The notes beneath the pieces are model-generated. The model ran no database searches and was not told the DNA's origin. It worked only from the letters and a program-made list of their open reading frames with translations. Shown here piece by piece: positions 2,209-19,207 of a DNA stretch of 64,000 bases. Numbering within the stretch: position 1 is the stretch's first letter; each line of letters opens with the position of its first letter. The stretch lies in the sequence record OQ603353.1; one strand, written 5' to 3'. The position numbers and the translations under genes were made by a program.

Positions 2209-2708
2209 GAGAAATCTCCGATGGGTTTAAGGATTTGATACTCCGCCTTTGTCAGGTTCAATACCCTGCGCAGGCGGTGATTGTGGGCATTGAGGAAAGC
2301 CAAGTCGCCTTCCTCTAACTTTTTGATTCCCGACAGGAATGCCTTCCAGTTCTTTCTAGACAAGGCAGCTATGAACTTGCTGACGGACCATTTCGATTGG
2401 CTAAACCAAGGCGAAGCTAGTTTGTCTCTGCACAGCTGCTCAATGTCATCCGGTAGCACTGTCGTGGCATACGGCACGCGCTCTAGGAATGTTGCATACT
2501 CATCGAGAATCAGGATGCGGGCTATTCTTAACTTACCTCTCTCCCGAGAGGTACGCAGGGCAGCTAACGTGATGCCCTTGGTGGTTGCAATGAGCTTCGG
2601 GGTAGTAACACCTTTGATGCACATTCCCTGAGCCCAATACATGCAGGAGAAGTTCCCACATGATCCTGTATAAGAAGTACCGATAAGTGGACAGCGAAGC
2701 TTTGTCAC
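2205..2708 (-). CDS. Hypothetical protein with N-terminal Cys cluster
   Basis: 167-aa ORF coupled to both neighbours by 4-nt overlaps; CPLIG..SCGNFSC....GMC. Confidence 0.65.
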   Translation of the reverse strand: MTKLRCPLIGTSYTGSCGNFSCMYWAQGMCIKGVTTPKLIATTKGITLAALRTSRERGKLRIARILILDEYATFLERVPYATTVLPDDIEQLCRDKLASPWFSQSKWSVSKFIAALSRKNWKAFLSGIKKLEEGDLAFLNAHNHRLRRVLNLTKAEYQILKPIGDFS

Positions 2709-3943
2709 TTTCTCCCTTTCCGACTAATAGCTTTGAGTAGCTTGTTCAAAGTTGCCTTGGTGAATTGGTAGTGGGGCAGGCTGTAATATAGCTCGGACGC
2801 ATACACACCAATAAGCATCGCATCAATAACGTGAGGCTCTTGATCCGTTTGCTTGTATACGTCCTCAAGGTTGAACTTGGCGTTGAATGCGTTTTTCCAC
2901 TGCGACGCAGGGAATACCACAGTCGGTTCTTTCGTTCGTACCATGAATGCCCCGATCATTGCGTTCACTGCTTCCATCGTGGTGCCGTTCAAGCCCATGC
3001 GATACATGAACCTTTCCGCCGCCCACGCAGAAGCACCGAACTCCTGACCTAGTGACTCAATCTCATTCAAGAAGCTCAATACTTGCATTCGATGTTCGCT
3101 TCCGACCATCGACTTAACTGTGCTGTTGATCTTCCCTGATCCACGTACTACTGGAAGTTTTCCATACTCCACGTTGAGGCATGCCCATGCACAGTTGGAC
3201 GTACCTGGGTCGAGACTGAGAATGGTCATCATTGGCCGCTCAACACGGCGAATGATTCCCGCAACCCAATCGAACCCTGATCTGAACCACCCTTCGGGAA
3301 GCTCATAGGCATTGCGTCCCTTGACCACAAAGACGCGCAGCTTTTTCTTCTTTCCAGCTTTAGCCAAACTGACGAACTTGTCCCATTCCGAGTACAGCTT
3401 GTTTACGCTCACTGCACAGATGGGGGCGCCGTTGGCCATAGCAGACGGAACATAGTGGCGGACGATCTTGTCAGTGGTAAAGGCGATGGAATCCCCATCC
3501 CTAGCCGCCGTGATCTTGCCACGTATACAATTAGTCGGAAGGCGTCCTGAGCGATATTTGGCAGGTGGGGCCTTGCATTTGGGGCAGCTGTCGAACTTGG
3601 TAGCCGTAGCCCAATTATGTGCCGCCACGAACTGCTTGTTGCACACCTTGCACAGGTAACGCCGTCCTTTAGCCTCAATCCGAATGGGTAGCACACGGTC
3701 GAATTTCTTGATGACCCGAGCTATCCATTCGGCTTGCTGCTGGCCTCCTGCATACATGCAAGCCTGACACTTGCCTGCACTCGACAACATAACCCGAGGG
3801 CTACGATTGAACGTCTTGCCACACCCCACGCACTTGTGGGCTATGGCTATGTCCCTGCCTCGATACTTACCCAGCATCAAGTTGGAACCAAATCGCTTAG
3901 TCAGCGCCGCAGTGTAGGCCGCTGCCTTAGCCCCTTTTGCCAC
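2705..3943 (-). CDS. ruvC: Zinc-ribbon repeats fused to a C-terminal RuvC-like Holliday junction resolvase
   Basis: C-terminal ~175 aa has LSLDPGT (D), AAERF (E) and HVIDA (D) in RuvC spacing. The N-terminus has four CxxC pairs (CVGC, CQAC, CKVC, CPKC). Confidence 0.7.
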   Translation of the reverse strand: MAKGAKAAAYTAALTKRFGSNLMLGKYRGRDIAIAHKCVGCGKTFNRSPRVMLSSAGKCQACMYAGGQQQAEWIARVIKKFDRVLPIRIEAKGRRYLCKVCNKQFVAAHNWATATKFDSCPKCKAPPAKYRSGRLPTNCIRGKITAARDGDSIAFTTDKIVRHYVPSAMANGAPICAVSVNKLYSEWDKFVSLAKAGKKKKLRVFVVKGRNAYELPEGWFRSGFDWVAGIIRRVERPMMTILSLDPGTSNCAWACLNVEYGKLPVVRGSGKINSTVKSMVGSEHRMQVLSFLNEIESLGQEFGASAWAAERFMYRMGLNGTTMEAVNAMIGAFMVRTKEPTVVFPASQWKNAFNAKFNLEDVYKQTDQEPHVIDAMLIGVYASELYYSLPHYQFTKATLNKLLKAISRKGRK

Positions 3944-4006
3944 AAATCCTCCGAAATTGGCGGTTAAACGTGCTATAGCTGGGATTGTCTAGATAGCCCC
4001 AGCAGT

Positions 4007-4014
4007 TAATTTTA
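4007..4014 (+). promoter_or_regulatory. Candidate late-promoter element TAATTTTA
   Basis: Intergenic, upstream of the structural block. The motif recurs at 15365, 17265, 50468 and, as a variant, 26185. Confidence 0.45.
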
Positions 4015-4064
4015 GATGACAGGCAAGCTCCCCTTGAACGTAGCGGGACGCTTCCTACGCCTAT

Positions 4065-4073
4065 TATTTACAG
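4065..4073 (-). promoter_or_regulatory. Candidate middle-promoter element CTGTAAATA for the - strand operon
   Basis: + strand TATTTACAG is the reverse complement of the core found upstream of five + strand non-structural genes. Confidence 0.5.
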
Positions 4074-4109
4074 TATTGCCCTGAACCGATTTCCTCATAA
4101 GAGTTGCTC

Positions 4110-5342
4110 ATGGCCACTAGAGTTTCACGGCCGAAAAGGCCATATCTACCTCCCAAGAATAATCGGTTGGTGAGTGTAGGGCAGCGTAATCTACAAGCCC
4201 TGCATCACAACAATCGACAGAACGTAATCAACGCCATCAGCGCTACCGGGTACCCCATCACCCTCTACAACACTCTGAGGACGGGCATCAAATGTAGCTG
4301 CATGTTCGTACAGCAACCTCCGAACCAACTCCTAGATCAAGAGGGGAAGCTTTCGGAAAGCAATATGAACGCGCTTCTTGAGCCTAGCTCTGGCCTACTT
4401 GATTACGGACAAGACACGCTACCCTCTGAGAACCTGCAATCGGTTCTTCCGGTGGAGCGAATCGCGCTCAACGATACTTCGCGTCCGATCCTGAATCCAT
4501 ACGAGCGCGCCGAACGCACTCAATTTGACCACATCGACACATCCACTGCACAGATGGATCGGATGGTGGACGATTGGGATACGCTCGAAATGGATACGGA
4601 GTTTGACGCAGTGCTGACCCCTGAACGCTTCATGGCTAATCAGGGACGCGCCTGCGCCGTGTGCTTCGGTACGGGTTACGTGGGTGGGTACGAACTGCTG
4701 CATGGCACTCGACTCATCCTGACGCCTCTGCATCCACATGAGCGCTCGGACACGATTGTACTTGATCGCAACGCCAGTCCTAACACGTTTGACAGCATGA
4801 CGGAAGGTTGGGTTCGTTTCCAAGTCACGCTGCCGCGAGGCACTGACTACGCCCTATTCCCCCGACTGTTCAACAACACGATCCCCATCCCCTACAAGGA
4901 ATGGAAGCTGTTGGATAACGAGGGCATTCGGATGGACCCTGCACGTATCAAGGAATTGTGCATTGGTAAACCGATCTTCATTGAGGTACACGTAGGTAAG
5001 CTAGTGTTCACCCATCTGGAGATTCTTCTCAGCGGTCGGCCTCAGAATCAGCCGCTCAAAGCAGACAGTCCTGAAATCCAGACGATCACTGACGTGAACC
5101 GAATGGACGCCAAGACGCCTGTTACGTGGATTCTCGGTGGCACCTACAATATCTCCAAGCGCGCTGTGGTGATTGACCACTTGCCGGGAATGAGTAGGCA
5201 CTGGCGAGTCAACGACATTCAAGCCCGTCGGGATAACCTCAACTGGATTTACGAAGAGACTCTATCGAGTCGATTGGTTGATCTGTACGAAATCACCCAA
5301 CTCCTACGTCCTGTCCGTTATGAAACGGCCCCACTAGACTAA
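4110..5342 (+). CDS. Probable virion protein with Cys motifs (CSC...CAVCFGTGYVGGY)
   Basis: Long ORF at the head of the structural block. I recall the CxC...CxxCxGTGxxGGY motif from large-myovirus virion proteins; not verified by search. Confidence 0.55.
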   Translation: MATRVSRPKRPYLPPKNNRLVSVGQRNLQALHHNNRQNVINAISATGYPITLYNTLRTGIKCSCMFVQQPPNQLLDQEGKLSESNMNALLEPSSGLLDYGQDTLPSENLQSVLPVERIALNDTSRPILNPYERAERTQFDHIDTSTAQMDRMVDDWDTLEMDTEFDAVLTPERFMANQGRACAVCFGTGYVGGYELLHGTRLILTPLHPHERSDTIVLDRNASPNTFDSMTEGWVRFQVTLPRGTDYALFPRLFNNTIPIPYKEWKLLDNEGIRMDPARIKELCIGKPIFIEVHVGKLVFTHLEILLSGRPQNQPLKADSPEIQTITDVNRMDAKTPVTWILGGTYNISKRAVVIDHLPGMSRHWRVNDIQARRDNLNWIYEETLSSRLVDLYEITQLLRPVRYETAPLD

Positions 5343-5350
5343 AACAACTT

Positions 5351-6658
5351 ATGAACAAGCTAAAGCGTCTCGGTCAGTCTACGGTGACTGCTCTCACTGA
5401 TTATCAGTTCCGCACTGTGGGTGAAGTGGAAAAGGTTCTGGCAAGCATGCCGCTGCCTACGATGGAAACTGCCACGTCCCTGCGTCGTCTCCCCATCTCC
5501 GACTCGAAGGAAGAAGTCCCCGTTGAGGACAACAAGCCAGAAGGTTGGACGCCGGGCCAGCGCCTGTCCACCAACAAGTTCAAGCATACTGGTGTTCCGG
5601 GTGAGCCGGTCAAGTTCAATCAGCGTGAATCGCGCGAGATTCGGGCCCTGACCAACCTGCACCACGACTTGGCGGATCAGGGCGAGAAGATCAACTCTCT
5701 CAAGGTCAACGCCCTAAATTCGTTCAAGGGTTCCAAGTTTGAATCTCAGATGGAACGCGCTCTTGGCCTGTTCGACAAGCGCGAGCGCGAACTGCTGGAA
5801 CACGAACTGGACGCACACGGTCGCCTGCACGAAATCGCAGAGAATGCGATCCCCGAGGACGCCCGTGTCACGTTCAACAAGACGGTCAACCCCATCGTCA
5901 AGAATCTGGCAGGCAAGTACAAGTCGCTGACCCGTCGCTACACCGTGACTCTGCTGCCGTCGGATCAGAATGTGGTGCAGTTCCAGCTGATCGTCTCGCT
6001 GGAGAAGCTCAAGAATGACAAGGGCTTTGTTTACCCGCACTTCTACATGATTGTCACCTGTATCATCGACAATCGGAATCATTACCACTACTACGTGGAC
6101 ACTTCGACGGCCAAGCCGGTTCCCAATGTGACTCCTATCGAGCACGAAAGCCGTGGCTTCTCCTTCACCAAGGCTGATGACGGTCGCCGCCTGCTGCAAT
6201 CGCACCTGCTGGTGGACGAAAGCATCGACCTGAGTATCCCGACTGAACTGCCGCGCAGTAAGGAAGAGATTGAGGGCACCAAGTTCCGTAACGACAACAT
6301 CCGCACGGTCAAGGTCAACGCTGACGATCACACGATCACGTTTACCACGGATAAGGATGTTGGTCCTAAGCTGGTGGACAAGGTGGTAAAGGACATTCTC
6401 GCCGATCTTGCTGGTCTGTTCCTGAGCAAGAACCTGCATGAGAAGATGAAGCACAAGGTAACCAAGCTGAGCACCGGCGGTTACAAGGTGGTGGTGTGGG
6501 TTGGTACTCCGACTGCTCGCATCGGTAAGGAGTATCAGGCAGACAGCCATCGTCTCGACGTGTTGCAGCACGATCTGGGTCTGGATGAAACTCAGGTCAA
6601 TCAGATTCGCCGCATGCTGCGTGGCCGCTCGCAGATTCGTATTCCGGATCATGAGTAA
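5351..6658 (+). CDS. Hypothetical protein, probable internal head protein
   Basis: 435-aa ORF with strong phage-like codon bias; N-terminal VTA/VLA/ETA motifs. Confidence 0.7.
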   Translation: MNKLKRLGQSTVTALTDYQFRTVGEVEKVLASMPLPTMETATSLRRLPISDSKEEVPVEDNKPEGWTPGQRLSTNKFKHTGVPGEPVKFNQRESREIRALTNLHHDLADQGEKINSLKVNALNSFKGSKFESQMERALGLFDKRERELLEHELDAHGRLHEIAENAIPEDARVTFNKTVNPIVKNLAGKYKSLTRRYTVTLLPSDQNVVQFQLIVSLEKLKNDKGFVYPHFYMIVTCIIDNRNHYHYYVDTSTAKPVPNVTPIEHESRGFSFTKADDGRRLLQSHLLVDESIDLSIPTELPRSKEEIEGTKFRNDNIRTVKVNADDHTITFTTDKDVGPKLVDKVVKDILADLAGLFLSKNLHEKMKHKVTKLSTGGYKVVVWVGTPTARIGKEYQADSHRLDVLQHDLGLDETQVNQIRRMLRGRSQIRIPDHE

Positions 6659-7889
6659 GCTTCGGCAGGTGCTGGTAGTGCAGGCGGACAAGGGCAACAA
6701 CGTAGATGACCCCAACATTACTCAGGACAGCACGGCGCTGGACAATCACGAACTGGCAATCTTCGGATTCGGCAAGAAGGCAGCGCATGAACGCAAGCGC
6801 ACTGCTTTCTACAAGCACCAAGACTCCGAAGTCGAGCACCTGAAAAATCACGCACGCTCTACCGGCTTCAACGGACACATCATGCGCGGTGGCAAGTTCA
6901 CCAAACGATACATCGCGCACATCAAGAAAGTGAATGACCCTGCCATCGCCCACCGGGTCATTCAATTCCATCACAAGAACCAGCTTGGTGTGAAGCATCG
7001 CCTTGGCTATCATCATGGCTTTACTACCGCAGTAGTAGACGCCGGACCTGATCCGCACACGGATGACTTCCACGATCTAAACGCGGAGCATTCCATGACT
7101 GAGAAGACTGAAAACGCTGCACTGTGGAACGGTGAAGCAACGCACACGATGGGTGACAACCTTGGCGAGATTATGGACGGTCGCCAGTTTGTTGGTACCT
7201 TGCTTGACTACGAGTTCAACGAAGTGCCCGTGTGGTATCAGCCGCGCAACAACACGCACTTCCGAGGTTCCTCCACACTGGTGATCCCTGATCGCACGGT
7301 GGCCTACGGTAACTGGAAGGTTCTGTCTACCAACGGCAAATTCCACGTGCGCAAGCTGCGTGCTTTCCTCGACAAGCAGCTGCCGCCCGACCGTCGTACG
7401 CCTGACTACAAGGCACTCAAGATCGAAATCAATCCGTCGGAGCTGGTCAAGTCCGTGGACACCACGATCCAGCCCAAGACTCAGGTGGACCTGACGGGTG
7501 GCACGATGAAGGTCACTCAGGATCGCCGCCTGTGGGACGATGAAACTTCGGTACTGGCGAACGAACAGATCGACATGCTGCTCACTCAGATGACGGCGGC
7601 CGGCTTCAATTTTGTACGTAGCTACTACAGCGTACACTACGCGTTCTACAACGCCAAGCTGGATAACCACGTTCTGTTCAACCTCACCACCTCTCGGACC
7701 AAGAGCATTCAGGAAATCGAGAATGCACTGAACGCAATCAGCTGGAACTTCCAGCCGTTGCCGTTCCAGTGGCCTGCGTACAACTACACCGCTCCCACGT
7801 GGCGCGCTATGGTGGAGTTGGATAACGGGCGTCGGCTTGTGATGGCATTGGACTACGCCAAGAGCACTTTGGTGTTCGACCTCCTGTAA
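6651..7889 (+). CDS. Hypothetical protein with His-rich N-terminal region, probable head protein
   Basis: ATG at 6651 (MSKLRQVLVV...) overlaps the upstream stop by 8 nt; the longer track start at 6501 is unlikely. Confidence 0.7.
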   Translation: MSKLRQVLVVQADKGNNVDDPNITQDSTALDNHELAIFGFGKKAAHERKRTAFYKHQDSEVEHLKNHARSTGFNGHIMRGGKFTKRYIAHIKKVNDPAIAHRVIQFHHKNQLGVKHRLGYHHGFTTAVVDAGPDPHTDDFHDLNAEHSMTEKTENAALWNGEATHTMGDNLGEIMDGRQFVGTLLDYEFNEVPVWYQPRNNTHFRGSSTLVIPDRTVAYGNWKVLSTNGKFHVRKLRAFLDKQLPPDRRTPDYKALKIEINPSELVKSVDTTIQPKTQVDLTGGTMKVTQDRRLWDDETSVLANEQIDMLLTQMTAAGFNFVRSYYSVHYAFYNAKLDNHVLFNLTTSRTKSIQEIENALNAISWNFQPLPFQWPAYNYTAPTWRAMVELDNGRRLVMALDYAKSTLVFDLL

Positions 7890-7899
7890 CGGAACTTAT

Positions 7900-9843
7900 A
7901 TGGACAGGGAAAAAGAGCACCCATTCGACTATCATCTTCGGATGACGAATCTTGCTGCCAAGAAGGCGCACGAAGCTACGGCCCAAGGGCAGCACAACGA
8001 AGCGCACAAGTGGCATCTGAAAGTCCTGCATCACATAGGCGAAGCGCGCAAGCACAAGCCACCCACCATTCCACCTTCCATTGCCTCCGAGCTCGCTAAA
8101 ATGGCACATAATTCCAAGATGCACACCGCATCTGCGAAGACTTCAACCCTACAGCATGCTCATCGCATCGTTAATGACCATGCTTCGGATATCCACGGTG
8201 GTGATTCGCACAGCGACGTTTCTAAGCGTCGCTTCACTCGTTATCAGCTCCGCGCTGGTGACCTTGAGAACGCTATGCACGAACTCAAGACCGCTGGTTT
8301 CAAGACTGCTACCAACCATGCCCCGAGAGCCAAGCATCACTTGGTAAACGGACGGACGCATGTTCTCATCAGTCATCCTGAAGGCAGGCACGAAACTCAC
8401 ATCGTCAACGTTCAGCACGCAAGTGTTGATTCTTCTGAGAACTCCAACATGGCACTATCTGCGCAGGCACTCGCCAACCTCAAGTCTATGAATGAAACTG
8501 CCCGTGAGGATCATGAAGATCATGAGCCCTACGGCATGGAGAACAAGCCCCGTCCTAAGAAGACTACTGCAACCACGGAATCTCCTGCCGAACTCGCGGC
8601 GTATGGCACCTATCGGGGTTATCACCCGCATCGCGCCCTACATGACGAAGCGCGCCATCTGTTGGAATCCCGAGGCCACCACGCTAGTCATAGCTCTGAC
8701 CGCCTAGGTGCTCTCTCCGGGGTTAGGGGCATGCGTGTTCAACATCAAGTTGGCAGTACCGCAACTAAACTGCCCCGCCCCGAACAGCACGCCGAGCACA
8801 TGGCTGCCACGCAAGAACTCCACAAGCTTGTTCAGAAGCATGGCTTCCAGCATACCTCTGGCGGTACATATCATCATCCTGAGACGGGCGCAAAGGTTCA
8901 TATCCATACCCCTCATGTAGGCAAGACGGGTGATAGTTATCTGGATCACTTCGATAATCATACCAATATGAGCATCACCCACAGCCTGAGTAAGCGAAAG
9001 GCTACGGCGGGTATGGAAGAAGAAGTCGCCCTGTTCAGCAAGGGTCCGAAGTTCGGCAAGAACTGGAAGGATCATGAGAGCGTGGACGATCACAACCATC
9101 ACATGCGCCATGCAGGTAAGCATCTTGCGGAGTACAACAAGTACGCTGCCAAGGTGAACGAAGCACGCGCCGCTGGTCGGGGCGACGAGGCTAACAAGTT
9201 GGCAGAGCGTGCTCAGCGCCACCTCGGGTGGAATCGCAACCACCTCGCACGCGCTCGCAAAATCTACCACAAGTCGATGGCCGCATTTGAGGCGGAAATT
9301 GCTTCCCTGACTGTTGAAGCAGCCACTGGTTCTCAAAAGGCAGCAGACGCACGCGCTGACGCACGTAGGATGGAAAAGTTCCACGGGTATCACCGCCGCG
9401 CCAACGACGCTCACTCCAAGCTTGGTCTTCCGGGTGATCACGCCCACGCTCACCGTAGTGCTTCCAAGGACTACGGTACTGCCTTGCTGAATCATGTTGG
9501 TGTGCACGCCCCCGGCACCATTGATAGTAGTCCGGGAGAACACAAGGTAGGTACCCATCGTCACATCAAGGGCTCCTCTGCTTCGCACATCAGCCTGCAC
9601 TCTGTCCATAACAAGTTGACGGACCTAGGCTACGAGCACAAGGGCAAGGTAAATCATGATGACAAGGAACTGGAACATCATGAGTACCACCACCCGGAGC
9701 ACAAGTTCACGGTGTCCCTGTATAAGCGTTCTACGCACGACGGCGGCAAGGCGCATCACAGTGTTGGCGCTATCGTACACCATGCACCTAATGGATACGA
9801 ACACCATGCCAAGGGCCTGACTGCTACTAAGCCCACCACGTAA
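7900..9843 (+). CDS. Very His-rich modular protein, probable internal head protein
   Basis: About 85 His in 647 aa by hand count; His-rich blocks separated by acidic/Ala linkers. Confidence 0.75.
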   Translation: MDREKEHPFDYHLRMTNLAAKKAHEATAQGQHNEAHKWHLKVLHHIGEARKHKPPTIPPSIASELAKMAHNSKMHTASAKTSTLQHAHRIVNDHASDIHGGDSHSDVSKRRFTRYQLRAGDLENAMHELKTAGFKTATNHAPRAKHHLVNGRTHVLISHPEGRHETHIVNVQHASVDSSENSNMALSAQALANLKSMNETAREDHEDHEPYGMENKPRPKKTTATTESPAELAAYGTYRGYHPHRALHDEARHLLESRGHHASHSSDRLGALSGVRGMRVQHQVGSTATKLPRPEQHAEHMAATQELHKLVQKHGFQHTSGGTYHHPETGAKVHIHTPHVGKTGDSYLDHFDNHTNMSITHSLSKRKATAGMEEEVALFSKGPKFGKNWKDHESVDDHNHHMRHAGKHLAEYNKYAAKVNEARAAGRGDEANKLAERAQRHLGWNRNHLARARKIYHKSMAAFEAEIASLTVEAATGSQKAADARADARRMEKFHGYHRRANDAHSKLGLPGDHAHAHRSASKDYGTALLNHVGVHAPGTIDSSPGEHKVGTHRHIKGSSASHISLHSVHNKLTDLGYEHKGKVNHDDKELEHHEYHHPEHKFTVSLYKRSTHDGGKAHHSVGAIVHHAPNGYEHHAKGLTATKPTT

Positions 9844-10682
9844 TGATCGGTGAACGTCTCGCGTACCCAACTGGATATGGTTTCCAGTTGGGTATTCGCA
9901 CAAGTGAACGTACCATGTGGTCAGATGACGGGCGCACTGTTCCTCTGGATCATAAGCCGCAGGTAGTTGCCAATCCTATCAACTGCCCGCATCCAATCCC
10001 CGAGGATCAATTGATCCCTGCTGATTGGCGCAATCTGCTCACGGCCAAGCTTCGGTGTCCTGCTTTTGGTACGCAACTTCTGTACGGCATGTGGGCGACC
10101 ATCGCTCACCTGAGCAACTTCAAAGCTGCACAGACGCCGTTGATCGAAATCACGGATGATCTACCTGCGCATAACCTTGGCAACTTCAACATTGTCCACG
10201 GTCGGCCTCGCATACAGGTAGCCAAGTCGCGCATCTACACTTACGCGGCGCTGGCGTCGATTATCGCTCACGAAACTGCGCACCAAATTCAACGCACCGT
10301 GTTCAACTCTTCGGAAGAGTCCCACGGCGAACTGTTCGACAAGATTTGTAGGGAGATTACCTCCCGGACTGGCATTGCGATCCATCGTAGTGTCGATTTT
10401 GTTGGGGACAGGTCATTCGCTGTTAGCGATCCCCTGCCTAGCAAGTACCCCATTTACTACATCATCGCTGATGGGCGGGTATCGTACACGGATAGTCATA
10501 GTGAAGTGACGGAAATAATCACTGCTCCTGACGCTATTGATGCAGACCTCCAAGTCTACAAGAGCCACGACATTAGCTTGATTGACTGGCTCCGTCCTGA
10601 AACTGACCTGAAACGATTTACCCGAGTTCGCCCGGACGTGCTAAAGGTCATCGCACACAGAGGCACACGCATTTACCCATGA
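9843..10682 (+). CDS. SprT-family zinc metalloprotease
   Basis: IIAHETAHQ (HExxH) followed by SHGELFDKICREI, the SprT HG..F motif. TAATG overlap with the upstream gene. Confidence 0.75.
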   Translation: MIGERLAYPTGYGFQLGIRTSERTMWSDDGRTVPLDHKPQVVANPINCPHPIPEDQLIPADWRNLLTAKLRCPAFGTQLLYGMWATIAHLSNFKAAQTPLIEITDDLPAHNLGNFNIVHGRPRIQVAKSRIYTYAALASIIAHETAHQIQRTVFNSSEESHGELFDKICREITSRTGIAIHRSVDFVGDRSFAVSDPLPSKYPIYYIIADGRVSYTDSHSEVTEIITAPDAIDADLQVYKSHDISLIDWLRPETDLKRFTRVRPDVLKVIAHRGTRIYP

Positions 10683-12685
10683 GCAACATTCACGATTTCA
10701 TCAAGACCCAGCTGCTGGCTGCTGCCCATTTCCAAGAAACGCTGGATGCGGGTGGCAAGAAGTGGCTCAAGAGTGGTGGTATCGCCGACGGTCGGAAGTT
10801 CCTAGAGGAACGCAAGTTCCCTAAATCGGTCATCAAGGCATACGATACTGCCATGAAGAACGTCCTTGCAGGTAAGGACTTTGAGGAAGACGTTGATCCG
10901 CATTTGCAGGAAGTACAGAATGCAGTGAAGGAGCGTCTGCCCAAGCTGACCAAGGACACTTCTATTCCGATCGCAGACATCAAGACTCTGAAAGACGTGA
11001 GTCTGATCCTGCGCACTGAATCGGACTCTGCATGGGCACGTGTCGAGAAGGACATTGGCCGACTGCGTGACGAAGACCTCAACCGCATCATCGCTCCTGC
11101 TGTGGAATCCTCCAGCAAGTACGTCAAAGACCTCAAGGCAGCGTTCAAGAAACTGACGGGCAAAGATGGTACTGACTTCCGTGACCTAGAAGAACTGGCT
11201 GATCTTGATACTGATGAGTATCGGGAAGCAGTCAAGAAGATCATGGGCAAGAAGCCGGCTGCTGCTAAGGAATTCACCAAGGCACGCAGCGAGTACACCA
11301 AGGCCAGCAAGAAGGCCCACATGGCTCATGTACGTGCTTCCGGCAGTCACCTGATGGACGTGGAGACGGCCAAGAAACACCTTGAGTCTAAGGGCTTCCG
11401 TCACTCCATCCCTGAAGGCTTCAAGGGCAAGCTTGATGAAAACGGACGTATCCACACTGAGCATGGTGAACCCATCGCCGGTGGTATCTCCGGCACCGTC
11501 AAGATGAATCCGAAGTACGAGAAGGGTTCTAGCGTCAATGTCCTGACCTACTATCCTCCGGGTGCGAAGACGCCGCAGTACCTGTTCACCGCAGGTGCCA
11601 AGGCTAACGCCATCCAGAAGAAGAGTCAGAAGGTTGACGAACTGTCCGACAAGATTGGTGACCTGCGTAAGAAGTGGGGCGCTGACCTGAACAGTAAGGA
11701 TCCGAGCACTCGCATTGCTGCTGCCATTCTCGAAGCCTGCTACCACACGTCTGCACGTATCGGTAATCTGAGCAACAAGAATGATGGCATGACGACCTTG
11801 AAGGGTAGGAATGTCAAGGTCAACGGGGATACGGTCACCTTCAGCTACACTGGCAAATCGGACCAGCAGCAGAAGCACGTCATGAAGGGCGACGATCCCA
11901 TTTCCAAGAAGGCTGTGGAAATCATCAAGGCCCTCAAGGAAAACGCGAAGCCTGACGACCTGCTTTTCCGCAACAAGAATCGCCGCGTCGGTAGCCGTCA
12001 GGTCAACGATTACTTCACCTCCCTCGGTTCCCCCACCACGGTGCACAAGATGCGCCACGTTCGCGGCAACGCGATCATGAAGGAAGAACTGAAGAAGAAG
12101 CCGAAGACTGACGACGACAAGAAGATCACGGCCTTCCTGACTGCGGCTCTGGCCAAGGTTGGTGAGCAGCTGGGTCACTTCAACAAGGGCGAGGTCACCT
12201 TCGCCACTGCCCTGCAATCCTACGTCTCTCCGTCAATCGTTGAGAAGTATTATGACAGCTACAACATTCGTCCGCCCGCACGCATTCAGAAGGTTATTGA
12301 CCAAGCCAAGAAGGACAATGGTGAACCGACTACTAAGTTGCAGGACTTGCCGCATCACGGCGACGTGGCGGAAAAGCCTAAGGTACCTCGGGCGGTTAAG
12401 CGTGTAGCAAAGGAAGAAAAGGAAGCACCGAAGCCGCGTGTAGTGAAAAAGGTGGAGAAGCCTGCACCGAAGCCGCTGCGTCAAGTCAAGAAGGTGGAGA
12501 AGCCTGAACCCAAGGAACGCAAGCCCACACGCACGGTCAAGCACATTGAGCTGGGTCCCCTGTCTGCACAGCCTGTGAAGACGCCAGCTTGGTTCCAGAA
12601 GTTGAGCGGTAACGCACAGCGGACTTACATCAAGGAAAATCCGCACACCAAGTTGAAGCCCACCAAGCTGCCGGGCTCGAAGTAA
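10679..12685 (+). CDS. DNA topoisomerase IB with long N-terminal and Lys/Pro-rich C-terminal extensions
   Basis: Catalytic pentad in order: SARIGN (R), YTGKS (K), HKMRH (R), LGH (H), QSYVSP (Y). ATGA overlap with the SprT gene. Confidence 0.8.
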   Translation: MSNIHDFIKTQLLAAAHFQETLDAGGKKWLKSGGIADGRKFLEERKFPKSVIKAYDTAMKNVLAGKDFEEDVDPHLQEVQNAVKERLPKLTKDTSIPIADIKTLKDVSLILRTESDSAWARVEKDIGRLRDEDLNRIIAPAVESSSKYVKDLKAAFKKLTGKDGTDFRDLEELADLDTDEYREAVKKIMGKKPAAAKEFTKARSEYTKASKKAHMAHVRASGSHLMDVETAKKHLESKGFRHSIPEGFKGKLDENGRIHTEHGEPIAGGISGTVKMNPKYEKGSSVNVLTYYPPGAKTPQYLFTAGAKANAIQKKSQKVDELSDKIGDLRKKWGADLNSKDPSTRIAAAILEACYHTSARIGNLSNKNDGMTTLKGRNVKVNGDTVTFSYTGKSDQQQKHVMKGDDPISKKAVEIIKALKENAKPDDLLFRNKNRRVGSRQVNDYFTSLGSPTTVHKMRHVRGNAIMKEELKKKPKTDDDKKITAFLTAALAKVGEQLGHFNKGEVTFATALQSYVSPSIVEKYYDSYNIRPPARIQKVIDQAKKDNGEPTTKLQDLPHHGDVAEKPKVPRAVKRVAKEEKEAPKPRVVKKVEKPAPKPLRQVKKVEKPEPKERKPTRTVKHIELGPLSAQPVKTPAWFQKLSGNAQRTYIKENPHTKLKPTKLPGSK

Positions 12686-12692: not shown

Positions 12693-12730
12693 CCCACCGA
12701 CTAACCCTCGGTGGGTTCTGTCTTTGCTTT
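12693..12730 (+). terminator. Intrinsic terminator
   Basis: CCCACCGA/TCGGTGGG 8-bp stem followed by TTCTGTCTTTGCTTT. Confidence 0.7.
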
Positions 12731-12745: not shown

Positions 12746-13705
12746 ATGCCTGTTCGTATGCTGCAAGGTATCGCCAAGAAAGCGGGTACCACGCACGACC
12801 ACGCAGAGAAGATTTGGGACGATAGCAAGAAAATCGTTGATAAGAAGTTCTCGGAAGATGACCCGAGCTACTACCCATACCTGACAGGGATCGTCAAACG
12901 TCGCCTAGGCTTGTCGAAAGGTGAGAAGGCGATGTTCGACTCCCAAGACTCTACTAACGAGGAAGCTGACGTGGAAGAAACCGCAAAGAAGAATTGGAGT
13001 CAGGAAGTAACGGACAACGAAAAGTTCCATCCAAAGGAAGGTATCTTCAAGCAGAGCTCGGAGAAGATCGCCAAGTATCTGCTTAGTAAGGGTAAAGGAA
13101 AGGCCATGAGCCGCCTCACCTTCTACATCAACCGGGCTGGCAAGTCGCTGAGTCCCGAAGATCGTAATCGTCTTGAGCGTGCCAAGAAGATTATCTCCAA
13201 TGCTACTGGCAAGGAAACGGCCAAGGCGCACGACTATACCCCGCAGTACAAGACGCCTGAACAAATCGACAAGGGCCTGCGTATTACGGACAAGTTCTTC
13301 CGCACCATCTACTTCCCCAAGCTGGATAGCGACGGCAAGATCGTTGGCTACGATGAAGAACAAGTCAGTTCGGTGGACTTCGTGTTCCTGCAATCTGATC
13401 CCGACACTGATCCTGTGTGGACTGATCCCCACACCAGTGCGGTTGTCAAGGCGAGCACCCTGCATCACTACATGGTTCACCACGCAACCCCTAACGCACA
13501 GCGCCGTCGTCGGAACCTGCTGCAAGCTTACGCATCGGCAACCAACTTCAATGGCCCGATCATGAGCAACGGTTCTGTCACCGCTGAGTTCATGTGTCAC
13601 ATGCACGGCCATAGCAGCATTGCTATGGCCGAAGTAAGCCGCTCCTTTGAGTACCACAACCGAGTTCATGCTGGCGTGGATGACGATCTGATTGCCTCCA
13701 GCTGA
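12746..13705 (+). CDS. Modular protein containing a DUF3175-like domain, probable head protein
   Basis: KNWSQEVT...EGIF...KIA...AMSRLTFYINRAGKSL...LERAK resembles DUF3175 as I recall it. SD GGAG upstream. Confidence 0.65.
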   Translation: MPVRMLQGIAKKAGTTHDHAEKIWDDSKKIVDKKFSEDDPSYYPYLTGIVKRRLGLSKGEKAMFDSQDSTNEEADVEETAKKNWSQEVTDNEKFHPKEGIFKQSSEKIAKYLLSKGKGKAMSRLTFYINRAGKSLSPEDRNRLERAKKIISNATGKETAKAHDYTPQYKTPEQIDKGLRITDKFFRTIYFPKLDSDGKIVGYDEEQVSSVDFVFLQSDPDTDPVWTDPHTSAVVKASTLHHYMVHHATPNAQRRRRNLLQAYASATNFNGPIMSNGSVTAEFMCHMHGHSSIAMAEVSRSFEYHNRVHAGVDDDLIASS

Positions 13706-13762
13706 TACGGATGAATCCTCATAGTAGGGAGTGGCCAACCTAACTTTTTAATGAGGAGACCG

Positions 13763-14137
13763 ATGTTCGACCTGTCCATGATCGAAACGCTGAACAACTT
13801 CCTTGAGACGCCGACCGCTGCGCGCGCAATCGCCTTCGGTATGCTTATCTCTTGGGGTGGTACGCAACTCGTCAAGTTCAATCCGCTGGTTCGGAAGCTG
13901 CTGAATCATCTGCCGCCCGAAATGGGCCGGACGGTTGTGCAAGCAATCGCTTTCCTGCTGGCATTCATTCCTACGTTCCTGCTGTGGCCGGGTATGGGTA
14001 CGGTCAAGGTACTGGGTAGCATTGTTGTAGGCACGTGGTCCCCCAAGGCGTATCAAAAGGCGACGGTGGTTCTCTACCACTTCTTCCCTTACCTTGAGCC
14101 CAAGCTGAGTGCCACCCCTGTTCCGAAGGAGAAGTAA
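13763..14137 (+). CDS. Small multi-pass membrane protein, possible holin
   Basis: GAGGAG at 13753-13758 favours ATG 13763; two to three hydrophobic segments. Confidence 0.5.
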   Translation: MFDLSMIETLNNFLETPTAARAIAFGMLISWGGTQLVKFNPLVRKLLNHLPPEMGRTVVQAIAFLLAFIPTFLLWPGMGTVKVLGSIVVGTWSPKAYQKATVVLYHFFPYLEPKLSATPVPKEK

Positions 14138-14202
14138 TCCTACTTGGAAGGTAGGAGTAGCAACAACATGGATGTTCCACCTACTACTAATGGAGATTCG
14201 CC

Positions 14203-14457
14203 ATGTATAGCATCACCAATCTCGGCTTTGAACGTCTCGTTGTTGGCAGCCTGGGTTTCGAGCCGCAGGTTGCCCACCCGATCAGTGATCTGGACTTCGC
14301 CCGCCTGTCGGTAGAGGAAAAGTCCCTGATTAACGCCAAGGTTGCCGAGGGCACCTTCTCCGTGGTGCACACCGCTGAAAAGCAGCTGGTCTTCTCTCCG
14401 GCTCCCCTCTCGGCTGGCCTCGGTCCCATCGTTGCTGCGGAAAATCCGCAGGGCTGA
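14203..14457 (+). CDS. Small hypothetical virion protein, paralogous to the N-terminus of the next gene
   Basis: SD GGAG; shares MY.[IF]TN.....[LM].[VF]G.L.[FL].P with 14481. Confidence 0.65.
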   Translation: MYSITNLGFERLVVGSLGFEPQVAHPISDLDFARLSVEEKSLINAKVAEGTFSVVHTAEKQLVFSPAPLSAGLGPIVAAENPQG

Positions 14458-14480
14458 TCCACACTTAGAGGTTCTCCAGT

Positions 14481-15278
14481 ATGTATGTGTTTACCAACAC
14501 CTCAGCTAATCAGATGACGTTCGGCGACCTGACGCTGGCCCCGAACGCCACCACTGAATTCCCTGACGATCGGGTGGCTGCCCTGAGCACCCACAACCTG
14601 AAAGCGCTCAACGATTTTGCCAACGGCAATCCGCTGATCCTGAAGGTCGAGTATCAGGCTTCGGTTCCGCCGGTCACCATCGGTCCTGTATCCGCCGCTC
14701 CTGCCATTTCTACTCCGTTCGGTAACAAACTGATGCAGGCTGCTGATGCAGATGCTGCTAAGGAACTGCTCGGGGAAGGTCAAGGTAGTGGCTATACGTT
14801 GCCTGTCGCTACGGGCTCGGTCCTTGGTGGCGTCAAGATCGGTGCGGGCCTTAGTGCTACCGCCGATGGCACCCTGAGTCGCAGCGCCCTTGTTGCCGGA
14901 GACATTCCAGATTTGGACGCCGCCAAGATCGCCTCCGGCACTCTGGCGGTTGCGCGTTTGGGTACTGGCACTCCAAGTGCTGCTAACGTGCTTTTGGGTT
15001 CGGGCGCTTTTGGCGTACCTCCGACTGCTACTAAGGCAACCGCTCTGGCTACGGGCCGTACCTTCACTCTGAGTGGCGGGGCTTCCGGTACCACCGCCTC
15101 TCCGTTCGATGGCTCTGCTAACGCCACCCTCAACGTTACGCTGGCTACTCCGACAAGTGCTCTCCGTGGCGGTGTCCTCCAGCAGGCCGCCATTGCTGAC
15201 TTGACCGCCGCTCCTACCCAGCAGGATTTCAACGCCCTGCTGGCAGCCCTGCGTGCAGCCTCGGTAATCGCTTCCTGA
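14481..15278 (+). CDS. Head fibre / capsid decoration protein
   Basis: YTLPVAT..VLGGVKIGAGL...DGTLS repeat, and a C-terminus AAIADLTAAPTQQDFNALLAALRAASVIAS typical of phage head-fibre proteins. Confidence 0.7.
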   Translation: MYVFTNTSANQMTFGDLTLAPNATTEFPDDRVAALSTHNLKALNDFANGNPLILKVEYQASVPPVTIGPVSAAPAISTPFGNKLMQAADADAAKELLGEGQGSGYTLPVATGSVLGGVKIGAGLSATADGTLSRSALVAGDIPDLDAAKIASGTLAVARLGTGTPSAANVLLGSGAFGVPPTATKATALATGRTFTLSGGASGTTASPFDGSANATLNVTLATPTSALRGGVLQQAAIADLTAAPTQQDFNALLAALRAASVIAS

Positions 15279-15286
15279 CAACAACC

Positions 15287-15302
15287 GGGCCAAGGACGGC
15301 CC
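15287..15302 (+). promoter_or_regulatory. Hairpin GGGCC-AAGGAC-GGCCC (CsrA/RsmA-type loop)
   Basis: The 14-mer GGCCAAGGACGGCC recurs identically at 26171-26184; both copies follow a stop codon. Confidence 0.5.
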
Positions 15303-15364
15303 ACTAGTCGGGTAAACCTTTCAAATTAGCCGGGTAAGGGTGCCTCAAATACGGTACTTGGCAG

Positions 15365-15373
15365 CTAATTTTA
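15365..15373 (+). promoter_or_regulatory. Candidate late-promoter element CTAATTTTA
   Basis: Intergenic, ~37 nt upstream of the 15410 start. Confidence 0.5.
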
Positions 15374-15409
15374 CTGTGAAGGCGAGGGCTATTCCTCCGT
15401 GCTTTTCAG

Positions 15410-16756
15410 GTGCAGGGATTCACCACTTCCTATGGCCTCAACTCAATGTCAGCCTTTCCTAATGTAATCAATGACGCTGTTGTCGGACAACAAGTCGTAG
15501 CCAACGCGAGCTTCTTCATTGCTCCTAACACGGATACGACCGGATTGATTGCCCGGTACAGTATCGTAGACGCAGACGATGCGGAGTGGACTTCCGGCAT
15601 CGCCACAAACATTGTGGTGTCGCCTCTAGGTTCGCGCTCCAAGGTGAATGCCTCGGCTTCGGTCGATATTCCCTACACGCTACCTGTCGAGTTCTACGGT
15701 ACCAAGTATCAACTGGCGTGGACCCTTGAAACTCAAGATGGTACATTCGTTTCCAGTTATATCGAGTCGTTCAACGTCAAGCCTGTCATGCAGGGTGGCG
15801 TGTTCGGCGTACCGGACATCGTAGAAGCAGCAACAGACAAAACGATTCTCAAAGCGGTACTGCCTTCCAACGATCAAGTGGAAGTGCTGGTGTTCAAGGG
15901 CAACGCCTGCCTTAACAACGGCAGCCCTGTCATCCTGCAACCGGGTGACAAGGTATTCAACGGTACGCAGTATCTGGGTAGTTTCAACCATGCTACCCTG
16001 CGTAACCCCGGAGCGTCCCCTCCCCCGAATTCTGCGTTGGGGATCAACCAGCCGTCCCCTGCTCTCATACAAGCGATGGCAGCAGCGCGCGGCTTGAACC
16101 CCGCCGACATTACAGCCAGCAATGAATCGCTGACTCCTTCACTTGAGCCCTATAACTTGTGGTGGCAATACAAGGATGAGGATTCGGGTGAGGTAGTTGT
16201 CGAGGATAGCTATCTGTATCATGTGACTCCAATGATCCTACAGGCAGGACGGGAGCTACAACAGTTTGTGAACCGCGCTAACAACGAAGGCCGGTTGCAG
16301 GAACTGACCATCGACCTGAACGTAATCATTCACTTCCTGAAGCAAGGCGGCGACTACTTCAACAGTGTCGGTATGCCAACCTTCTTTGACTTCACCTGTG
16401 CTAATGGACCCTTCCGTCAATTCTGGGTCATGTGCAGTGCAGTGCGTCTCCTCCGTAGTCAGTACCTTCTGGAGGCCGAACGTAGTATGGTGATGCAGGG
16501 CCAGAGCGTTACACTGGACATTGACATTACTGCGTACTACGAAACTGCGGCATCGGATGCCCAAGCATTCGTTGACCAATACTTGCCGGAGTTCAAGCAG
16601 AATATCACACGCAAGGGTCTGCTGACCGGCGACGGTGACTACGGCAACGGCGGCATCATTTCGAGGAACGTGGGTGCTATGGGCATTCAGTTGTCCGCGA
16701 CCACCAACCTGTTCTTCGGTTGGCGTAATCAGTACGCACGCCGTGGCCTGTTCTAA
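15410..16756 (+). CDS. Probable virion neck/head-completion protein
   Basis: 448-aa ORF. The C-terminal GQSVTLDIDITAYY segment resembles large-phage neck/adaptor proteins from memory; structural context. Confidence 0.5.
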   Translation: MQGFTTSYGLNSMSAFPNVINDAVVGQQVVANASFFIAPNTDTTGLIARYSIVDADDAEWTSGIATNIVVSPLGSRSKVNASASVDIPYTLPVEFYGTKYQLAWTLETQDGTFVSSYIESFNVKPVMQGGVFGVPDIVEAATDKTILKAVLPSNDQVEVLVFKGNACLNNGSPVILQPGDKVFNGTQYLGSFNHATLRNPGASPPPNSALGINQPSPALIQAMAAARGLNPADITASNESLTPSLEPYNLWWQYKDEDSGEVVVEDSYLYHVTPMILQAGRELQQFVNRANNEGRLQELTIDLNVIIHFLKQGGDYFNSVGMPTFFDFTCANGPFRQFWVMCSAVRLLRSQYLLEAERSMVMQGQSVTLDIDITAYYETAASDAQAFVDQYLPEFKQNITRKGLLTGDGDYGNGGIISRNVGAMGIQLSATTNLFFGWRNQYARRGLF

Positions 16757-16770
16757 GGGAAGGGACGATA

Positions 16771-17268
16771 ATGGATAACACAACGGCCGACTACGCGCGC
16801 GCTGTGTTTGAGTACCTCATCCAGCGGTTTCCGAAGGTGTGGGGTAAATGCAAGTACAGCACGAACTTCCTTGGTGGAGGGGCCACTAGATACAGATTGT
16901 TTTCCTCTACTCCCGACACCTGCGTGACCTATGGCAGCAGTTACTTCCAAGGTTATGCCTACCATGAAGTCATCCTCGACCACACGGTAAAGGGTGATTG
17001 CGAATGCCTGCTTTACACAGCACGGTCTATTTACGAAGACACAGGAAATAACAGCAGCACCACCTATCCGGTAGACATCGCTGCTGTCAAGGTTGACATG
17101 AGCAAACCCAGTTCGGAAACGGCACAACAGATCGCTACCGAAATCTTGGAGTCTTTGCATGCCAATGCCGCACAGATTGAGGACGTGCCCAATGAAAGCT
17201 TTGTTCACGCCTGCGATTGGCACGCAAAGCAGTTGTATAGCGTGTCACCGGAGCAGACTGGTGGCTAA
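16771..17268 (+). CDS. Hypothetical protein
   Basis: 165-aa ORF with SD (AAGGGA) in the operon. Confidence 0.65.
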   Translation: MDNTTADYARAVFEYLIQRFPKVWGKCKYSTNFLGGGATRYRLFSSTPDTCVTYGSSYFQGYAYHEVILDHTVKGDCECLLYTARSIYEDTGNNSSTTYPVDIAAVKVDMSKPSSETAQQIATEILESLHANAAQIEDVPNESFVHACDWHAKQLYSVSPEQTGG

Positions 17269-17276
17269 TTTCAAAC

Positions 17277-17750
17277 ATGCCAAGACTTCAACTAATGTCC
17301 GAAGATGCTAACACTCGGACTGCTGTCGAGTTGGCGCAGGTACGCCGCGACCTTGATACCCTTCTCAAGATCGTTCGGGATGGCAACGGTACGGCGGCCC
17401 TCATCAACCGAATGCAGTCTGTAGAAAAAGACCTTACTCACCTTGTAGCCCGTGACAAGGAAGCAAAAGAAGAGCTTGAAAAGCTCAAGGTGCAGTACGC
17501 GGAGTTGTCAAAGACTCTAATTGACGTAAACCATTCTGTCGGCACCATCAGCGCAGATTTTGCTCGCTTTGTTCAGGAGTTCAAGATCAGCGAGGATGCA
17601 CGCGACAAGGCGCGCATCAAGAAGACCGATCTGCTGTGGGGCATGATTACCACGGTTGTCGTTTCCCTCGTTGTTAACTACGTGCTCAACCACAAGGTTG
17701 TTCCTTCCCAGCCCTCTGTTCCCACCACCGCTGAATCGCGGTCCAAGTAA
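17277..17750 (+). CDS. Coiled-coil protein with C-terminal transmembrane helix
   Basis: Heptad-rich body, GNG motif, then LLWGMITTVVVSLVVNYVL. Confidence 0.65.
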   Translation: MPRLQLMSEDANTRTAVELAQVRRDLDTLLKIVRDGNGTAALINRMQSVEKDLTHLVARDKEAKEELEKLKVQYAELSKTLIDVNHSVGTISADFARFVQEFKISEDARDKARIKKTDLLWGMITTVVVSLVVNYVLNHKVVPSQPSVPTTAESRSK

Positions 17751-17766
17751 TTCACTGGAGATAAAC

Positions 17767-18627: not shown

Positions 18628-18634
18628 CGAGCCT

Positions 18635-18664
18635 AGCCGCCCCTGAAAGATGGGGCGGCTTTGT
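18635..18664 (+). terminator. Intrinsic terminator
   Basis: AGCCGCCCC/GGGGCGGCT 9-bp stem followed by TTGT. Confidence 0.7.
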
Positions 18665-19195: not shown

Positions 19196-19207
19196 TAGGA
19201 GTAACGC

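Follow-up and report, generated by a model that had tools for sequence, protein, structure and literature searches.

Why should a jumbo phage carry the gene for a SprT-family protease directly in front of, and overlapping, the gene for a type IB topoisomerase (Topo IB)? Topo IB acts through a covalent 3'-phosphotyrosyl-DNA intermediate, and if a nick, an abasic site or another lesion prevents religation, this intermediate becomes a bulky DNA-protein crosslink. In eukaryotes, the proteases SPRTN and Wss1 proteolyse Top1-DNA adducts. SprT-family proteins are common in bacteria and phages; to our knowledge none of them has an established substrate there, and DNA-protein-crosslink proteolysis is well documented in eukaryotes only. 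A first-pass annotation of the window analyzed here, a 64,000-nucleotide stretch of record OQ603353.1, proposed that the phage pair is an adduct-forming enzyme with the protease that clears it, and considered this to be without earlier description in a phage; in agreement with this, we found no paper linking a SprT protease and Topo IB in phages.

The protease and topoisomerase genes lie at the end of a tightly packed block

The window comes from a ~227-kb Xanthomonas jumbo phage, with 100% identity to Ep026 and 99.9% to PhiXhv-16. All of the sequence features listed in the first-pass annotation were recovered at their positions, and the three plus-strand reading frames at 7900-9843, 9843-10682 and 10679-12685 were confirmed to be open. 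The block to which they belong (4110-12685) starts with three orphan genes on the same strand, A (4110-5342), B (5351-6658) and C (~6585-7889), which have no family in Pfam, PADLOC or NCBIfam; the sole match of orphan A is phrog_21298, of unknown function. These orphans are syntenic with SprT and Topo IB at the related phage loci L002, L016, L017, L018, L020 and L028. They are followed by a His-rich reading frame (7900-9843, plus strand; 647 aa, 85 His or 13%, pI 9.5), which found no family match in profile searches. Its proposed coupling to the SprT gene stands as far as the junction is concerned, the stop and start codons overlapping by 1 nt in TAATG, but conservation does not extend to this gene: a homologue is present in L006 only and absent from L002, L016, L017, L018 and L028-30, and we therefore regard it as accessory. 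The block is closed, as had been suggested, by a terminator-like hairpin with a T-rich tail (12693-12730, plus strand); in the hairpin itself (12693-12715), 6 of the 8 stem pairs are G-C and the folding energy is -16.7 kcal/mol (z -2.4), and 8 nt before the gene that follows (12746) there is a separate AGGAG.

The reported overlap of the SprT stop with the Topo IB start is present as a 4-nt ATGA (10679-10682, plus strand). The same ATGA junction is seen in L002 and L006 and a TGATG or TAATG in L028-30, while the two genes are separated by 2-4 nt in L016 and L018. The sole Shine-Dalgarno (SD)-like motif before the Topo IB start lies 15 nt upstream, and the genes downstream of the block have theirs at 6-9 nt. 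Judged from this arrangement, SprT and Topo IB are made from one message, with SprT immediately before, and are probably translationally coupled. An SD motif at working distance is missing from all six genes in 4110-12685, orphans A-C included, and is present in 8 of the next 13 genes; tight coupling is thus a trait of the whole six-gene block and extends beyond the SprT/Topo IB pair.

The protease has a predicted SPRTN-like fold and an intact active site

The SprT-family zinc metalloprotease gene (9843-10682, plus strand; 279 aa) was assigned by Pfam family PF10263 (SprT-like) and by fold. The reading-frame product scores 25.0 bits against PF10263 (E 1.8e-5), just short of the gathering cut-off of 25.6 bits, a six-frame reading of this gene from PhiXhv-16 reaches 26.7 bits and passes the cut-off, and all seven members of the family match (best E 2.8e-7). 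The active site, encoded at 10269-10325 (plus strand), consists of H143-E144-x-x-H147 and the third zinc ligand H161, within the motifs HETAH (143-147) and HG (161-162). These four residues are invariant in seven sequences sharing 20-84% identity, and are also present in L028-30, which argues that SprT catalysis is under selection. The signature HExxH-x(6-30)-H[GDNA]xx[FWY] occurs once among the six-frame reading frames of at least 80 aa in the 64-kb window. Membership in the WLM family of Wss1 (PF08325) was considered and rejected, with one of the seven SprT members matching at E 0.045.

The AF2 model (pLDDT 76.9) comprises a small beta domain (residues 1-45), a protease core (~60-190) and an alpha/beta domain (199-279). 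Alignment to residues 29-158 of human SPRTN (6mdw) with VIA-align gave Z 14.3 and an rmsd of 2.6 Å over 124 residues, with the next folds far behind at Z 8-9. Foldseek supported the SprT/SPRTN fold at E about 1e-5, and placed SPRTN, GCNA and dvc-1 at the top of the AlphaFold Swiss-Prot matches, with bacterial SprT proteins after them. The initial identification of a SprT-type HExxH...HG protease is borne out by these results: on sequence and model, the 279-aa product is an active-looking zinc protease of the SprT/SPRTN fold.

The likeness to SPRTN and GCNA lies in the core, with the same fold and the same zinc site of HExxH and a downstream His, whereas sequence identity is only 14-18%. The alignment stops at SPRTN residue 158, and the zinc-binding, ssDNA-binding subdomain of SPRTN is absent from the phage protein. 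This counts against a role on DNA adducts, as does its charge, with a near-neutral pI of 6.6 overall and an acidic C-terminal domain of pI 5.8. The phage protein also lacks the basic region and the SHP, PIP and UBZ motifs of SPRTN, the last three of which serve eukaryotic partners, and ends at residue 279 after its second domain; in contrast to SPRTN, it begins with the small beta domain and finishes with a novel alpha/beta domain. Bacterial SprT proteins (E. coli SprT, Bacillus YdcK-type) belong to the same Pfam family but ranked below SPRTN in the structure search, and differ in their size of 145-170 aa and in a C-terminal Cys zinc ribbon; no such ribbon exists in the phage protein, which has three Cys in all and none in residues 195-279.

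The downstream gene encodes a phage-type topoisomerase IB

The 668-aa product of 10679-12685 (plus strand) matches PF01028 (E 1.6e-19; 70.6 bits against a cut-off of 23.7) and phrog_23460 (E 1.4e-89), the family to which Iyer et al. 2021 (PMC7824862) drew attention as a phage-specific Topo I. The product comprises a helical extension (1-221), a beta N-domain (225-302), a catalytic domain (305-546), a disordered Lys/Pro-rich linker (553-633) and a short conserved C-terminal motif. The claim that all five catalytic residues are retained proved correct: R360, K393, R459, H500 and Y515 align to the catalytic positions of Deinococcus Topo IB (2f4q) and are invariant in 13 phage sequences, the codon of the catalytic tyrosine Y515 (12221-12223, plus strand) falling in the active-site Tyr region of 2f4q. 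The top 22 Foldseek matches of the model are all Topo IB (E 1.8e-9 to 3.2e-4), the best being archaeal, human, variola and Deinococcus enzymes. Topo IB and tyrosine recombinases have only a superfamily fold in common, and assignment as a tyrosine recombinase or phage integrase was rejected, PF00589 scoring 20.2 bits (threshold 27.1) and XerH ranking after every Topo IB match. Catalytic domain, pentad and fold are thus those of the poxvirus, Deinococcus and archaeal enzymes, to which the phage enzyme adds the 220-aa helical N-terminal extension and, in the window's clade, the disordered tail with its terminal motif. This motif, P-x-W-F...Q-R-x-Y-[IL]-K-x-[HN]-P-x-[ST]-K-L (12578-12682, plus strand), is conserved in the Topo IB of L002, L006, L016 and L017.

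Linkage of the two genes across phages

Topo IB is accompanied by a SprT gene within 6 kb at 16 of 21 phage loci, representing every one of the three Topo IB clades, and at none of five cellular plasmid-borne Topo IB loci. Loss of adjacency in relatives had been named beforehand as a ground for refuting the proposal, and it did not refute it, as the pair was found adjacent or overlapping in eight relatives with SprT identities of 21-84%. The window, L006, L002, L016, L018 and L028-30 show this arrangement, whereas L017 has one gene between the two and L020 has five. Beyond the overlapping upstream position, two further layouts occur in other Topo IB clades. In PaBG, Lu11, HRDY3 and L031, the gene for a larger KMPT-N+SprT protein is found 3-9 genes upstream of Topo IB, with genes for an MmcB-like repair nuclease and a thymidylate kinase between them, and in BCSR5 the SprT gene is 2 genes downstream. 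When the window is compared with loci of the PaBG, RSL1 and Rhizobium types, Topo IB and SprT (by profile) are essentially the sole neighbours still in common, tblastn adding one weakly matched gene in each of RSL1, Motura and NCTB; the flanks of the pair vary among relatives. A tblastn search of 50,697 phage records found each of three SprT subtypes only in phages that carry Topo IB.

The KMPT-N+SprT proteins are related to the window protein at the profile level (96% probability, E 2.4e-9, 178 columns), and the aligned region includes a special post-protease domain common to both types (hhalign, 96%). They differ in their length of 440-500 aa, their KMPT-N N-terminal domain and long C-terminal region, their marginal BLASTP similarity (E 0.046), and a gene position near Topo IB without overlap. 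Since the post-protease domain is held in common, the linkage may be one ancestral arrangement and not several independent ones, which weakens it as evidence for a functional partnership. Further points on that side are that RSL1 and NCTB have Topo IB and no detectable SprT, that the SprT genes of Motura and the Rhizobium phages lie 11-25 kb from Topo IB, and that within the window's superclade orphans B and C match SprT in synteny.

Candidate roles of the protease

We tentatively favor SprT as a safeguard of Topo IB, a reading to which we give a real but less than even chance. By analogy with the action of SPRTN and Wss1 on eukaryotic Top1 complexes, phage Topo IB trapped covalently on DNA would be degraded by the SprT protease to a peptide stub, which nucleases would then remove; in PaBG-type phages, a gene for an MmcB-like nuclease lies between SprT and Topo IB. 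A dedicated tyrosyl-DNA phosphodiesterase is not expected in the host. This role as a protease of Topo IB adducts is plausible given the SPRTN-like fold, the invariant active site and the intact Topo IB pentad, together with the linkage at 16 of 21 loci in all three clades, its persistence at depth amid variable flanks, the restriction to Topo IB phages and the eukaryotic precedent. DNA-dependent proteolysis of trapped Topo IB by the phage enzyme is itself conjecture on our part, and the near-equimolar synthesis that coupling implies is unusual for a repair protease. A slightly more doubtful proposition is that an 'enzyme plus safeguard' cassette, complete in itself, exists in this group of jumbo phages, its SPRTN-like protease degrading Topo IB trapped covalently on phage DNA.

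Iyer et al. 2021 (PMC7824862) listed SprT-like peptidase and Topo I genes separately, and favored host targets for the jumbo-phage peptidases because these are patchily distributed and number 1-3 in a genome. A general DNA-associated or host-directed protease, acting on host nucleoid or defence proteins or on any DNA-protein crosslink and paired with Topo IB as part of a common DNA-handling block, would also suit the two SprT copies of Rhizobium phages at a distance from Topo IB, the equal synteny of B and C, and the surroundings of Topo IB in relatives, where its neighbours serve repair and nucleotide metabolism (MmcB-like, Tmk, NUDIX, a glycosylase). We consider this unlikely, though it deserves attention, as linkage to Topo IB outlives the linkage of all other neighbours when the three clades are compared, the start-stop overlap is a repeated feature (the window, L002, L006 and L028-30) that gives way only to short gaps in L016 and L018, and the subtypes are confined to Topo IB phages. 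The same depth bears on inherited synteny, in which proximity would reflect a slowly rearranging part of related genomes and no functional link at all. All of the loci do belong to a single broad group of jumbo phages (subgroup 2.2 in Iyer et al., PMC7824862), the SprT subtypes are probably one lineage, and several Topo IB phages have no linkage; nevertheless, Topo IB diverges by up to 70-75% between clades with hardly any other neighbour kept, and SprT has changed position, from overlapping to distant upstream to downstream, while staying close, so that we find this explanation rather improbable.

Two further alternatives, which we rate alike and a shade lower again, take coupled expression or genome position as their starting point. 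A processing or regulatory partner acting off DNA, trimming the helical extension or the Lys/Pro-rich tail or limiting free Topo IB, would account for a coupled synthesis in which the protease is translated first and the amounts are probably near-equimolar, and for the targets on offer, the 220-aa extension and, in the window's clade, a predicted 80-aa disordered tail that should be easily cut. The tail is absent, however, in L018, L020 and the PaBG and RSL1 clades despite their SprT linkage, SprT-family maturation proteases have no precedent that we know of, and complex prediction, itself uninformative, showed no interface. Packaging of both proteins in the head, for injection with the DNA and action on that DNA as it enters, or on host proteins that bind it, is suggested by the position of the block just upstream of head-fibre-like, connector and tail-fibre genes, by an Alt-like ADP-ribosyltransferase gene after Topo IB in L002, and by the occurrence of the Topo IB C-terminal motif in unrelated proteins of related phages, small basic ones among them. 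In PaBG, the gene adjoining Topo IB encodes a virion protein, gp83, and the virions hold a 221-kDa helicase-like protein, probably the 1972-aa ORF matched by the window's 1635-aa helicase. Against this, Motura, RSL1 and Lu11 have their Topo IB gene in a neighbourhood of metabolism and repair, and the co-packaging raised in the first-pass annotation gained no support from the PaBG virion proteome, a survey of low sensitivity whose 14 bands include neither protein.

If SprT does act as the safeguard of Topo IB, bacterial viruses would gain their first dedicated protease pathway against DNA-protein crosslinks, and SprT proteins of the prokaryotic world their first defined substrate; the SprT-Top1 partnership would not be a eukaryotic invention, and it would be clear how phages afford Topo IB in hosts probably without a tyrosyl-DNA phosphodiesterase. 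The proposed substrate is that of SPRTN, but the phage protease shares an operon with it, which is not so in eukaryotes. The logic proposed here, a protease route for trapped Topo IB, is also that of yeast Wss1 (WLM family) acting with Tdp1 on Top1 complexes; no Tdp1-like gene was detected in five of the Topo IB phages by a search whose control was silent. A protease hard-wired to one adduct-forming enzyme would make a simple two-protein system, in which to ask whether a SprT domain reduced to its minimum, with no help from ubiquitin, PCNA or p97 adaptors, can recognise and clear a topoisomerase adduct. Such a pairing would bear on the origin of the SPRTN/Wss1-Top1 repair axis and would guide the annotation of SprT-like genes, among which the KMPT-N+SprT protein of PaBG is already annotated 'SprT-like/Spartan'.

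Organization of the gene block

All of the open reading frames, overlaps, proteins and the hairpin described in the first-pass annotation were observed. A His-rich ORF (7900-9843, + strand; 647 aa, 13% His) is joined through a TAATG junction to the SprT protease ORF (9843-10682, + strand; 279 aa), which in turn overlaps the topoisomerase IB (Topo IB) ORF (10679-12685, + strand; 668 aa) at an ATGA junction. A terminator-like hairpin with a GC-rich 8-bp stem and a T-rich tail lies 3' of the topoisomerase gene (12693-12715, + strand), and the gene downstream of it is preceded by an AGGAG of its own. In the block at 4110-12685, a Shine-Dalgarno sequence at working distance (5-10 nt) is missing from each of the six genes; such a sequence is found at 6-9 nt in 8 of the next 13 genes (12746-24041). 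Taken together with the overlapping junctions, this makes the entire block, beyond the SprT/Topo IB pair, appear translationally chained, and suggests that translation either starts there in another way or proceeds by chained re-initiation.

The orphan genes A (4110-5342), B (5351-6658) and C (~6585-7889) and the His-rich gene encode proteins that could not be assigned to any family of Pfam, PADLOC or NCBIfam; gene A alone has a PHROG match, to a family of unknown function, and a search of the ESM Atlas with gene C returned no match. The His-rich gene was rejected as a conserved member of the unit, as its only homolog outside the window is in the related locus L006. His-rich segments do recur around the pair, in the 7900-9843 ORF, in L006 and in a second related locus, L017. 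The DUF3175-containing protein (12746-13705) has its first ~58 residues in common with the products of L017:6875-7741, the His-rich gene that separates SprT from Topo IB in that locus, and L006:10864-11424, a shorter protein. Divergent from the block, on the - strand, 2705-3943 encodes a 412-aa protein with an HNH-like N-terminal region and a RuvC-like Holliday-junction resolvase domain.

Over the 2.8 kb spanning the pair, identity is 100% to the unannotated records of Xanthomonas phage Ep026 and Erwinia phage Ep032, and 98.8-99.9% to PhiXhv-12, -15 and -16, which are jumbo phages of 227-229 kb. In the PhiXhv records the second gene of the pair is annotated as 'topoisomerase' and the first as 'hypothetical protein'; the publication on these phages mentions neither. 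In public sequencing runs the phage is present only as contigs of flat depth, which are probably virion DNA and are silent on transcripts and operon structure.

Structure of the topoisomerase and the protease

The Topo IB ORF matches PF01028 (E 1.6e-19) and phrog_23460, a family confined to phages (E 1.4e-89), and the pentad R360, K393, R459, H500 and Y515, aligned to the Deinococcus enzyme, is unchanged in 13 phage sequences. The structural model comprises, in order, a 220-aa helical extension, the usual beta N-domain, the catalytic domain, a disordered Lys/Pro-rich linker of ~80 aa and a short conserved terminal motif; all 22 top matches in a structural search with this model were type IB topoisomerases. 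In the window's clade the C-terminus (12578-12682) carries the motif W-F/W ... Q-[RK]-x-Y-[IL]-K-x-H-P-x-[ST]-K-[LYF]. This motif is also found, at N-terminal or internal positions, in proteins of related jumbo phages that share no other relationship and are often rich in Lys (L016:1373-2512, L017:10613-11449, L018:2295-2531, L020:150-524, L015:8923-9231 and L032:4623-6074), and may be a common targeting or partner-binding peptide.

The 279-aa protease scores 25.0 bits against the Pfam SprT-like profile, under the threshold of 25.6, and a six-frame read scores slightly over it at 26.7 bits; the profile matches seven of seven members of the protease family. Exhaustive searches returned few relatives, with 20-84% identity, across which H143, E144, H147 and H161 are unchanged. 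The AlphaFold model (pLDDT 76.9) has three parts: a small beta N-terminal domain (residues 1-45), a SPRTN-like core (residues 61-190) and an alpha/beta C-terminal domain (residues 199-279) with no significant structural match. The core superposes on the protease subdomain of human SPRTN with a Z-score of 14.3 and an rmsd of 2.6 Å, clearly above its match to the minigluzincins (Z 8-9), and a search of Swiss-Prot models ranked SPRTN, GCNA and dvc-1 first, with bacterial SprT below. Structural alignment found no counterpart of the SPRTN zinc-binding subdomain, on which ground SPRTN proper was rejected, and the C-terminal domain contains no Cys, on which ground a bacterial zinc-ribbon SprT was rejected; WLM was rejected as well, since it matches only one of seven family members (E 0.045). 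These features together identify the protein as a member of the SprT protease family that carries new accessory domains and is an ortholog of neither Spartan nor E. coli SprT. Several nucleocapsid cap and plug proteins of the baculovirus AcMNPV also match the core of the model (Z 5.5-6.7), a weak hint that SprT-like folds occur among viral capsid-associated proteins as well.

Linkage of SprT and Topo IB across phages

Wherever a relative of the 279-aa protease was detectable, a Topo IB gene was adjacent or close by. The ATGA overlap is kept in L006 (84% SprT identity) and L002 (50%); a gap of 2-4 nt separates the genes in L016 (38%) and L018 (about 21-27%), one gene is inserted in L017 (about 28-30%), and five genes lie between them in L020 (about 20-27%). 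In three further contigs, found via Topo IB (L028-30), the gene for a 294-aa SprT has a one-base overlap with the Topo IB gene. In a second Topo IB clade (PaBG, Lu11, HRDY3 and L031), a larger KMPT-N+SprT protein is encoded 3-9 genes upstream, with genes for an MmcB-like repair nuclease and a thymidylate kinase intervening in the PaBG-type layout. In the third, SprT lies two genes downstream in BCSR5 and 25 kb away in Motura, and none was detected in RSL1. Rhizobium phages carry two SprT copies 11-17 kb from Topo IB, and no SprT was detected in NCTB. Overall, a strict signature scan placed SprT within 6 kb of Topo IB at 16 of 21 loci, linkage is present in all three clades of the Topo IB tree, and among 50,697 phage records tblastn found each SprT subtype in Topo IB phages alone.

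The linkage gains weight from this restriction of the SprT subtypes and from the genes flanking the pair, which differ among relatives. It also gains weight from a comparison of the window with loci of the PaBG, RSL1 and Rhizobium types: essentially only Topo IB and, on profile evidence, SprT are kept near each other, with isolated weak tblastn matches of three other genes. On the opposite side, orphan genes B and C show synteny equal to that of SprT within the window's superclade, some Topo IB phages lack SprT, and the window-type and KMPT-N-type proteases have a distinctive post-protease domain in common (hhalign 96%), so the linkage across layouts may be one ancestral event. Scans of viral contigs with a single Topo protein or alignment A3 gave no confirmed relatives, and a metagenome scan gave one 3.6-kb contig (L027), of insufficient length to show the gene neighborhood. 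At five cellular loci with a plasmid-borne Topo IB, no SprT is nearby, which also counts in favor of the linkage; in one of these (L042, Rhizorhabdus wittichii pSWIT01, 2237-6729), Topo IB lies directly 3' of LigD, exonuclease III and a small hypothetical gene, a repair-type neighborhood unlike that in phages. We found no paper that brings together SprT and topoisomerase IB in phages. For subgroup 2.2 jumbo phages, Iyer et al. (2021; PMC7824862) describe the SprT-like peptidases in one section and the phage-specific Topo I in another, and they suggest that the peptidase has targets in the host.

Proposed function of the pair

The first-pass annotation had proposed that the phage co-expresses, and perhaps co-packages, a topoisomerase with a protease that clears its adducts. 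The conserved linkage, the SPRTN-like, active-looking protease and the intact Topo IB are established and support this proposal in part; the reading with most support is one in which the protease would serve the topoisomerase. In eukaryotes, SPRTN and Wss1 degrade trapped Top1-DNA complexes, and by extension from this biology the phage protease would most likely degrade trapped covalent Topo IB-DNA complexes in the same fashion; the protease would be translated first and Topo IB re-initiated at its stop. The gene order and the MmcB-like nuclease of the PaBG layout are consistent with a repair cassette. This phage does have an MmcB-like nuclease gene, but at a distance of about 170 kb from the pair, which excludes it from this locus. 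Against adduct degradation stand the missing SPRTN DNA-binding subdomain, the neutral to acidic charge of the protease, its coupled, near-equimolar synthesis with Topo IB, and the existence of Topo IB phages without SprT. Prediction of a SprT-Topo IB complex (score 0.00) was uninformative either way, as was a search for PF06087 (Tdp1-like), which gave no match in five phages and was equally silent in control genomes.

Packaging of both proteins in the virion is speculation: the block adjoins head, connector and tail-fiber genes, one relative has an Alt-like ADP-ribosyltransferase gene at the corresponding place, and the PaBG virion holds a giant helicase-like protein whose probable ORF is homologous to a helicase of the window, but the bands of the PaBG virion include neither SprT nor Topo IB, which leaves this part of the earlier proposal unsupported. 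Identity between the window helicase (30271-35178; 1635 aa, phrog_21391) and its 1972-aa PaBG counterpart is 30% across about 900 aa; the PaBG ORF probably corresponds to gp202, which forms the 221-kDa band listed as 'RuvB helicase-like' in the PaBG virion proteome. The 378-aa ADP-ribosyltransferase (Pfam ADPrib_exo_Tox, weak ART) is encoded at L002:11033-12169 and L003:7741-8877; in L002, the relative with 50% identity, it is inserted two genes 3' of Topo IB, whereas in the window the DUF3175 gene lies directly 3' of Topo IB.
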